This document shows, one piece after another, positions 16,629-21,499 of a DNA stretch of 64,000 bases (within the stretch, counting starts at the first letter, position 1; each line of letters starts with the position of its first letter). The position numbers were made by a program, and so were the translations under genes. The notes beneath the pieces are model-generated. The model saw only the letters and a list, made by a program, of their open reading frames with translations. It did no database searches and was not told where the DNA came from. The stretch is from Zygnema circumcarinatum SAG 698-1b. Its lineage: Eukaryota; Plantae; Zygnematophyceae. Where the stretch lies: positions 1,364,001 to 1,428,000 of the forward strand of contig CM074807.1 in NCBI GenBank assembly GCA_037447605.1, written 5' to 3'.

Positions 16629-18169
16629 AAATATTCAAAACTGGGGGGTAACCAAAACGGGCAGGCAAAATTTTCAAAACGGGGGTGCGAAAGACAAAAC
16701 GCGGGGGTGCAGTAGAGTTACCCCACTCCTTAGGGCGGTAAATACGAGGACCCCCTACTGTACAGTACAGTACCACAGTACGGACACATAGTACGGATAT
16801 GAAGGAGATCCGGCAAAGGCGACAAGCAGATTTCAACCGAGGGCACGAGCGGGAGTTTTTGGCGCCAAAACGAAAATGTAGATGAAACGGCTGCAGATTG
16901 AAGGCGCCAACATTGCCTCTAAAAACAAGGAAGCAAGCAGAGAAACAGACAAGGCCACGACCGCAGATCAGCACTCGGCCCCAAACCGGGACGTGACCAA
17001 CTGAAGACCTCCCATTTAACTCCCTCACTTCCCATTATTTTAGGCTACAGCAATACGACGTCGATGTGAGCATTGTGAGGAGAGTTTATGGTTTTGAGGG
17101 TTTTTAGGGTTGTGGATAGAGGAAGAAGTCTGCATTTAGGGTTGTGGGTAGGATCCTAAGCTTGCTGAAAAGCAAAGGAAAGCATGGATGTAGCTATGGA
17201 AGAGCATCGTAAAGCAGACAACCAGGACGCGTTCTTGTCCAATTTGCAACACTCGCCTTCCGTGCAGGAATCGAAGGGCTTGTTTTGCCATTTCCAACCG
17301 AAGCCAGGACACTTTTCCTTTCGATCCTCCGCTTTCAAGTTTGCATAGAATTTCTCAATACAAAGCTCAAACGTAGTGATTACCCGGAGTCTGTCCTCCT
17401 TGCTGTCTATGTACAGTGCGTACGCAGTGCGTGCTCGATACATGCGTAGTGGCTCCCACCTGCAACTGCCCTCTTTTCTCAACAAGGCTCCCTATACATT
17501 CAACCGTCAATGCCTTCGTCGCAGCCATCCTATGTCCGACGCCCATTTTCCCCTTCAACACGACTCCTCATTGGGGGCATGTACCCTCCGCTACTTTCGG
17601 CCATTCCCCTGCAGCGTAGCTCATTGCTTGAGGCGTGAGCCAATACACTCTCTCTCTCGGGAACCAACAAAGGAGTAGAGCACAGGCTGGAATTTGAATG
17701 AGTGTGCCAAAGTGGGTAGCATTGAATTATACGTAGGCATCAAAAGCATATCGCTTATTTGTAGACCTATTACAGATTCTATAGTAACGCAACAACTCTG
17801 TAAGCTCGCTGTTCGACTTAACGGAACAGCCACCAATTAGCTGCTAATCAAGTTACAGCAGACCCTAGTCTTTATGGGTACCTCGGCTACAACGAGAAAT
17901 TCCCCATCAGTCCTCACTTTGGCCTTATGCATGCGCTTACAAAGCATCAGCTACTCCTCTTGTTTGTGGGCTTAAAAAAAATTCGCCGACTTGCTACAGA
18001 GGCCACTAAACATTCCTCATCTCGAATGCTTGTCCGAGGAAACATTTCATCGTTTTAAAAAATGCAAAAAATACCGCTAATTTTTCCTTGCTTTAGGTTG
18101 CAAAAGCAGGGAGTTAAATGGAGATTAGGGAGCTCCAACATCAGCAAACGTGCTCTCCCCGCGGTGCAC

Positions 18170-20560
18170 TCAGTCGTTCACATGTTCACGTATTCCTGTA
18201 CCTGCTGTGGCTTCTGAGTCTTTGCATAGGCTGCCCGAGCCACTGCAGCCAAAGCTGCCCCAACAATGCCGGCATCGTTACGCATAGTGGCCACTTTGAT
18301 TGGGGTCTTATTTGGAAGGTTCACTTCATGCAGCCACTGCTCTCCCCAACGGCCCAAACAAACAACCCCCTTACGCTCCCATCAGATCTCCGAAACACCA
18401 TAACGCTGGTGTGCACGTAAAGAATGGAACGTCACGCTGAAGCATTTCACGAAAATAACAACAGTCGAATCTACCAACAAAATGAGGCCTCACCTCTTCA
18501 TGTGCATTGCTCACACCCCCGCCGATAACCTGCGCCCAATTCAGCAACATAACCAAACATGAAGCACGCATGAGCATGACCAATTGCAGGATGCCGTTGT
18601 GAGAAAACATTCTTCATCACCAGAGCAAGAATCAAGCCAGCACCGAAGAAACGAGAAAACGTTTACTGTTGGAGTCAGTTCTCTCAGCAAAATAGGGAAG
18701 CCGTGACCCTTACAAAAAGCGAAGGCCACATTAGTCGCTCGAGATACGAAAGGTACCACTGCACTTTCACTGCCCACTCCTTCCACGACCAGCAGTTCTG
18801 CTTCACCAGAACACCTGCGGCTGCCTGCTCTGCCTCCACGCCATCTAACTCAAGGTGGCCAAGCTCTAAATTGGGAACCTGCGGGTACACACAGCAGCAA
18901 ATGATGAGATTTCATCCTATTCCAGTCCACTATCTTTTTGATTTACTCATTTCTAATAATGCTAAATTCAAGGTACAATTTCAACATTACATATCCAACA
19001 TACCACGGCAAAACCAGTCAGGAGGAACTCACCAAGATCCCATTGACAAACATAGCGGTTCCTATCCCCGTGCCAAAAGTGACCATCATCACAATACCAT
19101 TCCGTTTCTCTTCTCCGGAACCCGCTCCAAAGGCAATTTCTGCATATCCTGCGGCGTCCGCATCATTTACCACCACCATTGGCACGCCTGAATGCTCCTC
19201 AAATATCTCCTCAGCGTGTGAGCCAATCCAGCTTTTGTCAACTTCACATCCATCCAACAACCGAAAGAATGCCCATCAGCAAACGTCAGAAGAGCTTCTT
19301 AACTGTCAGTATATCACTGACCTGTAAACTTGACTATTTTGCTACTAGCAGGTCAGCAACGGAGACTCAAGTATATCGTGAGGAATTGAAGGTTGAATAG
19401 TCTCACTATTGGCAGCAGTGCAGACGACTCCATTGCGCACCACCGCTGGAAGGCCTACTCCCACCTCGCCTGTCCACTGCAAAAGAGATTAAAACTGCTT
19501 CAGGCACACGTTTTTACCCTCTTCTCTTGGGTCGAAATTGTTCATCGGAGTATTCTGGAGAAGCAGATCAGCAGCTCCAAGGTCACAAACCAACGAAAAT
19601 TATTTCTCATCCAACTTCTACATCCTTTGTTTAAAAGCCTCCAGTCCCACTACTTACTCTAACTCACTTTACATGGCCCAGCATCTGTAAAAAGTTTTCG
19701 ACAAGGTCTGTAACTGTAGCTTCCAAAAGTCATGATTTGACCCGAGTCCCTCTCAAATCGGAGTGCAGTAAGACGTTCGAAAGCGATTACATTCACGCAT
19801 GAGGCTAGCCACAAGCTGAGAAGTCGAGACTATCTATACGTCTAGCAAAACGGTTCGTGATGTCCATATCAGCATCGAATATTTCAAGTTCTATAGTGGC
19901 AAGAATGAGCCATAGTGCGAAGTGAAGCCATCAGTTCATCGTGCGCCTTGCGGAGCACGATGACTTGTGATATCCTTAGGCGTAAGCCTACTGCCCCTTA
20001 ATGAAGTAGAGCCTAGAAACAGTGACTTACTGAGATGTCCTTGATCCAAAGCTCAAGATCATTGCTTCGCTTTCCTCAAATTGCAACTTGACATGTTCCA
20101 TAGTCTCATCATGCAGATCTGGCAGATCTGGCTGCTGTTGCTCTCCCATCCTCACCTGGAAATGGTCGAGCATAGCTTTAAGGACGCATGCCACTGCCTC
20201 CGGGGTGGCAGGATTAGGCGTATCAATGACATGGCGTTCAGACACCAGGTCGCCCGTGTGCATGTTCACAAGAGCAGCTTTAATGGTGGTTCCCCCAATA
20301 TCAATGCCAAGGATGGTGCGCTCAGAGTCACAGGGCTCAACAACATTTTGAGCTCCATTTCCCTGCTCCAATTGGGAAACAACTGACAGGCTGCTCCGAG
20401 GACGAGGAGCATTGGCAGTAAGCGAGGATTTACCAAACGGCGCCGCATCGATCACTTTTCCTCGCCATGGAGATAACGACAGCTGGTTTGGGGATGAACT
20501 GGAGAAAGCCAAGCTGCCACTTCCTGTTTGAATGGGCAATGTGCATTGTATAGATGCCAT
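18170..20560 (-). CDS. ppgK: Polyphosphate glucokinase-like ROK kinase with N-terminal plastid transit peptide, 6 coding exons
   Basis: Spliced: ILGIDIGGTTIKAALVN..TPNPATPEAV..|WTGEVGVGLPAVVRNGVVCTAAN|IDKSWIG..VVNDADAAGYAE..VTFGTGIGTAMFVNGIL|VPNLELGHLELDGVEAEQAAA..WSWKEWA..LERLMWPSLF|VIGGGVS..|..RNDAGIVGAALAA. All introns are GT-AG. The N-terminal 65 aa are Ser-rich and acid-poor. Confidence 0.88.
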
Positions 20561-21499
20561 TTTTCTGTCAGAACAAGGGAGTAAAAACTCTGATCGCTGA
20601 ACAGGAAGGCAGACGCACTCTCACGTCAAAACGACTGTCACGGTTGAGGCACCGATAAAGTTCAGCAGGCCCTTCCAAATATGTTCATCAGTCTCTTCCA
20701 GCTGGCAGAATCTTGAAGGTATCTGCAAATTGCAAGTAGCTTATACCTGCAAAAAAGGAAGAACAAGAAGTCCCCAGCGTTTTAAAACCATCGCCTCAAG
20801 TCATTGATACAGAGGAGATGACGATAAAGGCTGTGGTTAAGGTAAATTAAAATAACACGAGCGGGCCGAAAACTGAGGAGGAGGCAGCAATAGCCACCGA
20901 GCTGTGACAGAAGAAAAGTGTTGAACAGTAAAAAAAACGAGCAAGGGTAATGACGCTTGACTCTTCAAAGCACGTCAGCTGCATTCCATTTTCATCGCTC
21001 ATACGCACCACTATATTTGCGTATGCATTAGCTTGTCCTTTCCAGGAGCATACAAATACTCTAATACAGAGCTACTGGCATACGCCCTGCATCGACTCAA
21101 CTGCAGAGATCTCGGAAAACCGAGTTCAATTGACCGCACCTTAAGCCAAATTTTGACAAGATCTCAAGCCTGCTTCTAATTATAAGTGCACTCCTCTCGC
21201 CTGCACTCTCACAAAGTCCCAAATCTCCCCCTCTCTCTTATCCTCCTCATCAAACCCAAAGCAAAAGATGCCCTTCAAGGCAAAAATAAATTCTAGCAAG
21301 AAGCGCACTTTCTGCCGCGGGGGCGCCGCTTCCTGCAGCTTTAGAGAGAGGCTCCCTGATGAGAAAGGCTCCTCCTGCAACCTCCTCCTTCAGGCAGCAC
21401 AGACAGGCTGCTTGAAGCGGGGCCGTCCCCCTCTTCCTTCTGGGGACAGGCCGTCCGTCCTCACAGGACGTCTCTTGAAAGCACTTCTAAGCGGCCCAA

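Follow-up and report, generated by a model that had tools for sequence, protein, structure and literature searches.

A spliced gene of the polyphosphate glucokinase family, of bacterial descent, in the streptophyte alga Zygnema circumcarinatum

Polyphosphate glucokinases and glucomannokinases (PPGK and PPGMK, EC 2.7.1.63) have been regarded as exclusively bacterial in reviews published in 2020 and 2025, and land plants as phosphorylating glucose only with hexokinases (PMC7332688, PMC12696579). The only PPGK characterised from an oxygenic phototroph is All1371 of Anabaena sp. PCC 7120, which is strictly dependent on polyphosphate (PMC4252912). We have analysed a stretch of 64,000 nucleotides (nt) from Zygnema circumcarinatum SAG 698-1b (GCA_037447605.1, contig CM074807.1, positions 1,364,001 to 1,428,000), called the window here, whose minus strand carries a gene for a PPGK-family kinase. 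The gene is shown to be intact, under constraint and of bacterial descent. It is not private to this genome, being a member of an old streptophyte-algal family, and the eukaryotic PPGK-family clade consists of two paralogues, types A and B, of which the window gene represents type B. All coordinates are positions in the window.

The product resembles bacterial PPGK and PPGMK (protein family NF045942, structure 1WOQ) in its fold, core length and phosphate-1, connect-1, phosphate-2, ExGH and GGG motifs, as well as in the absence of the zinc-binding Cys motif of ROK kinases, and is 45-55% identical to them. Unlike the bacterial systems, the window gene is nuclear and has six exons, and its protein carries a leader of about 82 amino acids, a 2-amino-acid insertion and a C-terminal tail that is conserved. 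It also has other residues in place of two phosphate-1 glycines and five nearly invariant basic residues of the bacterial enzymes. Likened by description, All1371 belongs to the same PPGK family; its subfamily is a separate one, confined to cyanobacteria that form heterocysts, and it is not among the nearest relatives.

A transcribed six-exon gene of the PPGK family

After reading both strands, the coding sequence was found to run from 20560 to 18178 on the minus strand as six exons in one frame, with 1044 nt encoding 347 amino acids. Introns 1 to 5 measure 679, 165, 154, 184 and 157 nt, and all have GT..AG boundaries. An in-frame stop is located 21 codons 5' of the ATG at 20560, in the same exon and with no intervening start.

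Three studies of this organism supplied the transcript data, namely six runs in which 54-66% of the words sampled from the locus were present, and contigs from one run per study. All transcript runs were examined as assembled contigs, which cover splicing rather than expression level or conditions. The contigs are 100% identical to the window and skip exactly 18337-18493, 18530-18713, 18879-19032, 19242-19406 and 19477-20155. Since such joints can arise only from spliced RNA, the gene is transcribed and the six-exon model is correct. A reading of the sequence alone had proposed that six exons give a complete ROK kinase, and had counted a lack of transcription as fatal to its view; the GT-AG model together with spliced contigs from three studies confirms the gene structure and the expression of the kinase gene.

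Assignment to the family was obtained at several levels. Pfam gave ROK matches on exons 1 and 3. Among NCBIfam models, NF045942 (polyphosphate-glucose phosphotransferase) was the top match for all five exons that could be scanned, with 57.9, 21.7, 74.5, 51.9 and 22.9 bits for exons 1, 2, 3, 4 and 6, respectively, and these matches are collinear on the model (positions 3-53, corresponding to amino acids 84-134, then 55-77, 79-145, 146-200 and 216-241). The window protein was scored on this model exon by exon, exon 5 with its 12 amino acids being too short to scan, while the joined exons were used in local BLAST searches, alignments and trees. Full-length type B orthologues scored 270-307 bits on NF045942, for which the cut-off is 250, and at most 84 bits on the next family.

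Relatives were gathered by HMMER with exon 3 against 1.84 billion representatives and then by word searches, and the closest full-length relatives are P0181 and P0178 (76% and 67% identical to the window protein). The closest solved structure by sequence is 1WOQ, the polyphosphate/ATP (adenosine triphosphate) glucomannokinase of Arthrobacter sp. KM, which is the best match in the PDB for exon 3 as well. In the AlphaFold model of the orthologue P0181, the core has a predicted local distance difference test (pLDDT) value above 95 and residues 1-78 are disordered (pLDDT below 50). Its best fold match is again 1WOQ, with a template modelling (TM) score of 0.91 and a root-mean-square deviation of 1.4 Å.

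Among 77 family members, conservation reaches 90% or more in 74 columns, and the window protein keeps every one of them; therefore, its catalytic apparatus is intact. All the motifs listed in the sequence-only reading were found, namely TAANIDKSWIG (across the exon 2/3 junction), NDADAAGYAE, TFGTGIG, PNLELGHLELDGVEAE, WSWKEWA and WPSLFVIGGGVS. The Cys-rich zinc motif, said there to be lacking, is indeed missing: the window protein has no trace of the ROK pattern CxCGxxGC, a single Cys is present downstream of GHLELDG, and the alignment to 1WOQ has no insertion at this place.

The coordinates of the exons and the flanking transcribed parts are collected in Table 1. For contig ends that hang loose at 20746-20748, the only matching places in the window are 21010-21039 and 21142-21171, and the boundaries of the intron in the 5' untranslated region (UTR) were deduced from the window sequence. 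A third loose end at 20746, of 28 letters, found no placement in the window. Integration in the nuclear genome is evident from the spliceosomal introns, the spliced transcripts and the eukaryotic neighbour genes. The G+C content of the window is 49%, with no compositional break at the gene.

Table 1. Features of the PPGK-family gene and its transcript in the window
Feature	Position	Strand	Content and evidence
Coding exon 1, amino acids 1-135	20156..20560	-	ATG, leader and phosphate-1 motif DIGGTTIKAA; GTGAGG donor after ...HFQ; joint 19476/20156 in three runs
Transit-peptide-like leader, amino acids 1-82	20315..20560	-	Composition; without counterpart in bacterial homologues
Coding exon 2, 70 nt, WTGEVGVGLPAVVRNGVVCTAAN + 1 nt, phase 1	19407..19476	-	Joints 19241/19407 and 19476/20156
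Coding exon 3, 209 nt	19033..19241	-	IDKSWIG, catalytic NDADAAG (connect-1), TFGTGIG (phosphate-2); spliced joints
Coding exon 4, 55 amino acids	18714..18878	-	Sugar-binding PNLELGHLELDGVEAE, WSWKEWA; V253 replaces bacterial Arg/Lys
Coding micro-exon 5, 12 amino acids, VIGGGVSNAHEE	18494..18529	-	Adenosine/phosphate loop GGGVS, then NA..E; joints 18336/18494 and 18527/18712
Coding exon 6, 52 amino acids + stop	18178..18336	-	NDAGIVGAA motif and type-B-specific C-terminal tail ...ARAAYAKTQKPQQVQEYVNM
3' UTR	17900..18177	-	One contig covers 17900-18336 and extends about 430 nt (429 letters) below 17900
5' UTR part of exon 1	20561..20746	-	Contigs reach 20746; in-frame stops present
5'-UTR intron, two alternative donors	20747-21008 or 20747-21139	-	CT..AC on the plus strand in both; upstream non-coding exon from 21009 or 21140

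Further observations were made on the transcript data. Contigs of low depth (6-9, versus 100-225 for the exons) span most of intron 1 (19477-20155) in all three studies, which suggests some intron retention, pre-mRNA or other unspliced RNA, or carry-over of DNA. One contig has G>A at 19383 in intron 2. Three runs from 2017 with the same species label contain none of the locus words, as against the 54-66% in the runs of 2019-2024, and two different strains or species may possibly have been registered under one name. One of the runs from 2017 also gave no contig sequence for the stretch of the gene.

Phosphate donor, location and proposed role

We give a probability of about 0.5 to the reading that the window gene encodes an active, probably plastid, hexokinase-like enzyme favouring ATP. 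Its donor part is suggested by an alignment of 79 PPGKs from bacteria with 8 proteins of type A and 13 of type B, compared by columns in the numbering of the window protein. Columns 111, 253, 291, 292 and 295 hold Lys or Arg in 85-100% of the bacterial PPGKs, and column 200 in 74%; type A has kept basic residues at these columns in 8/8 proteins. In essentially all type B members, including the window protein, V111, V253, N291, A292, E/Q295 and S/A200 are found, that is, the residues R111, R/K253, K291, K292 and K295 of bacteria have been replaced. In the region of micro-exon 5 this appears as NA..E in the window protein versus KK..K in bacterial PPGKs and type A.

Conservation in 85% or more of the bacteria was found for 87 columns, of which type B has lost 7. 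These losses comprise four of the seven basic columns (Fisher p = 5e-4), two phosphate-1 glycines and one change common with type A. The phosphate-1 loop GTGIKG, retained in type A, has become GTT/SIKA in type B (GTTIKA in the window protein). Type A differs from the window protein also in having SWKKWA and in lacking the conserved C-terminal tail ...ARAAY..T.KPQQV.EY, which was gained by type B and is kept only there. Core net charge does not separate type B from bacteria; only the specific columns do.

According to the secondary structure of the P0181 model, three of the replaced basic residues lie directly after the GGGVS loop, at the start of a helix facing the donor site, and one lies on the strand adjoining the phosphate-1 hairpin. 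In PPGMK (1WOQ), two phosphates are reported to be bound between the domains, and positive residues to stabilise polyphosphate (bioRxiv 10.1101/2023.07.27.550799). The region of the phosphate-1 Lys is described in the literature as a likely common site for ATP and polyphosphate, and this Lys (K94) is retained in type B together with R109 and K/R266. The ATP-dependent ROK glucokinase 3VGK of Streptomyces griseus has DIGGTKIAAG and GGGVSDEGE at the corresponding sites. The window protein resembles 3VGK in the non-basic state of the phosphate-1 loop and of the residues after GGGVS; it is otherwise only about 26% identical and has neither the zinc motif nor the adenosine-clamp element of that enzyme. 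Because the two sites resemble 3VGK, the sequence of type B has shifted at these sites towards the state of ATP glucokinases.

Since the basic residues that were lost lie on either side of the site for the donor phosphate, ATP or another nucleoside triphosphate (NTP) is the most likely donor of type B, and the use of polyphosphate would have been lost or weakened. For the window protein, we judge ATP or another NTP, at roughly even odds, to be more probable than polyphosphate, which is doubtful as the donor of this copy. The type A paralogue, to judge from its residues, is more likely to be a true polyphosphate glucokinase.

The alternative that survives best, although we hold it to be clearly less probable, is a plastid-targeted glucokinase that would depend on polyphosphate, or use both polyphosphate and ATP, and would link a plastid polyphosphate store to starch-derived glucose. 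Membership in the PPGK family by hidden Markov model, fold and tree is consistent with it, as is the retention of K94, R109 and K/R266. The VTC polymerase is mostly absent in streptophytes (PMC12526157), so a bacterial-type polyphosphate system is plausible there. Against this alternative stand the replacement in essentially all type B members of five basic residues that are otherwise nearly invariant, the change of two phosphate-1 glycines, the direction of these changes towards 3VGK, and a long type B stem in the tree (0.45 substitutions per site), which fits a functional change.

Several findings weigh against the reading that we prefer, and some of them at the same time favour polyphosphate. 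Type B has gained basic residues elsewhere, at columns 101, 206, 254, 276, 301 and 329 in most members, and a relocated polyphosphate site is possible. The polyphosphate user 1WOQ is itself acidic at some of the changed positions: its column 295 holds Glu, and its segment SWDEYS is acidic. The part of the lost basic residues in binding polyphosphate is deduced from their position beside the GGGxS loop and the phosphate-1 hairpin. The exon scores of the window protein on NF045942 sum to 228.9 bits without exon 5, versus the curated cut-off of 250. With regard to location, a type B group (P0010, P0177 and P0300; acidic and His-rich) and Closterium models have acidic N-termini that do not resemble transit peptides.

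Location in the plastid is suggested by the leader of 82 amino acids ahead of the kinase core, which begins with ILGIDIGG at residue 83. The sequence-only reading had described about 65 Ser-rich residues resembling a transit peptide, which is close enough to the extension found, the first 62 or so residues of which are Ser-rich. The leader starts with MAS, its first charged residue is R33 and its first acidic residue is at position 38; Arg amounts to about 6%. In the first 40 amino acids, Ser and Thr make up 28% and Asp and Glu 3%, so this part is hydroxylated and acid-poor. Leaders of 78-128 amino acids with like character and no sequence similarity are present in P0181, P0178, P0179, P0180 and P0001/P0002, and in P0312 and P0318 of type A; most full-length proteins of both types have such a leader. 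The pattern looks like that of a cleavable presequence, and its low Arg content and uncharged start resemble a chloroplast presequence more than one for mitochondria.

A kinase that is not plastidial is unlikely; in that case the extension would direct the protein to mitochondria or to two compartments, or would be a disordered segment of a cytosolic protein. Algal presequences are hard to distinguish, and the acidic or His-rich starts of the Mesotaenium P0010 group and of Closterium type B models would be in keeping with such a location; the uncharged first 32 residues of the window protein, its content of Ser, Thr and Arg, and comparable unconserved leaders in type B orthologues and full-length type A proteins speak against it. 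The Mesotaenium group P0010, P0177 and P0300 may be a cytosolic isoform. As separate observations, this group has a divergent C-terminal end (...QVDVLCM), and the P0010 model is without the GGGVS micro-exon, probably because of an annotation gap.

Under the reading that we prefer, the type B protein would enter an organelle, for which the chloroplast stroma is the likeliest candidate, by its uncharged, Ser/Thr-rich leader of 60-80 amino acids, and would act there as an active glucose (hexose) 6-kinase, its catalytic and sugar-binding columns being otherwise intact. It would phosphorylate glucose derived from starch or maltose to glucose-6-phosphate in the stroma. Stromal hexokinases phosphorylate glucose in mosses and seed plants. 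The proposed job is therefore like that of the plastid stromal hexokinases of plants, such as moss HXK1, although the window protein is unrelated to eukaryotic hexokinases in sequence.

That type B changed its acceptor and not its donor, with another sugar or sugar derivative as its substrate or with a main role as a sugar sensor, is improbable. The long stem and the clade-specific conserved tail would suit such a change, but the sugar-binding and catalytic columns of PPGKs are unchanged (N and D of NDADAAG, E and H of ExGH, and the next Glu), the changes concentrate at elements of the donor side, and the heptapeptide linked with mannose in the Arthrobacter enzyme is absent from the window protein.

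A wider proposal, which is tentative and a little less probable than the use of polyphosphate by the window protein, is that the paralogues form an organelle-targeted pair in which type A works on polyphosphate and type B has switched to ATP by losing two glycines of the loop along with the five basic residues. Were this true, the pair would pinpoint the long-sought determinants of donor specificity in polyphosphate glucokinases.

Distribution and origin of the two paralogues

Type B has been found in Mesotaenium endlicherianum (two genes among the closest relatives), Spirogloea muscicola and several Closterium species, that is, in Zygnematophyceae only, apart from unnamed transcripts, and the window protein nests among zygnematophycean sequences in the trees. 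A search starting from the Closterium protein P0044 found type A in Klebsormidium nitens, Mesotaenium, Closterium and one EukProt transcriptome; examples are P0317 of Klebsormidium, ME000225S03396 of Mesotaenium and P0312 of Closterium, and also P0313, P0314, P0316 and P0318. In the top lists of relatives, the named eukaryotic carriers are streptophyte algae only, and in neither list did a land plant, chlorophyte, red alga or glaucophyte rank above the bacterial matches.

For bacterial relatives, a scan of one genome per bacterial species gave 551, and the best 80 were examined. These 80 have an identity of 43-52% and belong to Actinomycetota, Chloroflexota, Pseudomonadota, Deinococcota, Bacteroidota, Verrucomicrobiota, Planctomycetota and others; no cyanobacterium is among them. 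In a maximum-likelihood tree of 86 sequences, 21/21 eukaryotic proteins formed one clade with an ultrafast bootstrap of 97 and a Shimodaira-Hasegawa-like approximate likelihood ratio test (SH-aLRT) value of 89, and types A and B were each supported by 100/99. The sequence-only reading would have been given up if the protein had grouped outside the PPGKs; a phylogenetic check, unrooted because it held no ROK outgroup other than PPGK, placed the eukaryotic clade among bacterial sequences that are all of PPGK type. The nearest bacteria in the tree, placed there with weak support, are a mixture of Myxococcota, Entotheonella, Burkholderiales and Latescibacterota.

Besides their common clade, the two types have a 2-amino-acid insertion, P(G/N)(G/K)TP, which bacteria lack, and intron positions in common. 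Introns 1-4 of the window gene are present in Closterium type B, and introns 1 and 2 in Closterium type A. All five positions, including those that delimit the micro-exon of 12 amino acids, recur in Klebsormidium type A, and transit-peptide-like leaders are present in full-length models of type A. Because of the single clade, the common insertion and the common intron positions, the data point to one old transfer from bacteria and a subsequent duplication. From the common introns it follows that the gene was intron-bearing before the duplication into A and B and before Klebsormidiophyceae split from the line of Zygnematophyceae and land plants. On this comparison of sequences, land-plant ancestors must have possessed the family, which was later lost in land plants. 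In this history, a bacterial gene entered the streptophyte nucleus once, gained five introns and the insertion, and was then duplicated; type A has kept the bacterial character states, and type B evolved fast on its stem.

A gain by horizontal or endosymbiotic transfer, followed by domestication with introns and a transit peptide, had been suggested from the sequence alone. Bacterial descent, introns and leader have stood; a cyanobacterial source has found no support. Inheritance from the cyanobacterial plastid ancestor by endosymbiotic gene transfer is very improbable: a leader of plastid type precedes the kinase, PPGKs such as All1371 of Anabaena are known from some cyanobacteria (PMC4252912) and the trees here held no cyanobacterial sequences, but neither the best 80 of 551 relatives nor the nearest tree neighbours are cyanobacterial, the eukaryotic carriers named in the top lists are streptophyte algae only, and cyanobacterial PPGKs are reported only from heterocystous N2-fixers, as a subfamily of their own (PMC7332688).

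The Closterium protein P0044 stood among bacteria in a quick tree, which could be read as a second transfer or as contamination. This was rejected on the basis that introns 1 and 2 are common, that orthologues are present in Klebsormidium and Mesotaenium, and that the addition of these orthologues brings it into the eukaryotic clade. P0003 (GCA_054000515.1, L001) was likewise rejected as a eukaryotic relative, since it lies on a bacterial contig, the end of which truncates this PPGK gene; its neighbours CarboxypepD_reg, DUF4421 and PhoH suggest a Bacteroidota source. P0001 and P0002 are read-throughs of exon 1 of orthologues on short contigs.

Some details of individual type A models were also recorded. 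The gene of Klebsormidium (L087:2501-8101, DF237009.1) has, in addition to the five common introns, one more near the N-terminus. In the models of Closterium sp. Naga37s-1 (L086:5001-7657; P0044, P0313 and P0314), the 3' part repeats a segment encoding ...FLHLLSVPGGTPIVAAEM..., which reflects either local tandem duplication or errors in the gene models. Several Closterium models begin at an internal Met and are without the leader present in P0312.

What is new and what it means

The type A protein of Klebsormidium nitens is already annotated as 'polyphosphate glucokinase ppgK', and proteins of Closterium, Mesotaenium and Spirogloea have been deposited in public databases; thus, the presence of the family was not discovered through this window. 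In the literature search, we found no paper linking PPGK or ROK genes to streptophyte algae; one transcriptome paper on Nannochloropsis uses the label 'PPGK' without analysis. The following points are new: the structure of the family as two paralogues, the dating of the transfer by the common introns and the common insertion, the absence of the gene from land plants through loss, and the clade-wide loss of PPGK-typical basic residues in type B.

In the algal lineages that bracket the origin of land plants, two genes of the PPGK family are present, which are expressed, rich in introns and provided with leaders. The contrast between types A and B provides a short list of candidate residues for the use of polyphosphate versus ATP. 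The determinants of the donor in the PPGK family are relevant to ATP-free biocatalysis. The pair also bears on the question of a polyphosphate pool in streptophyte chloroplasts.

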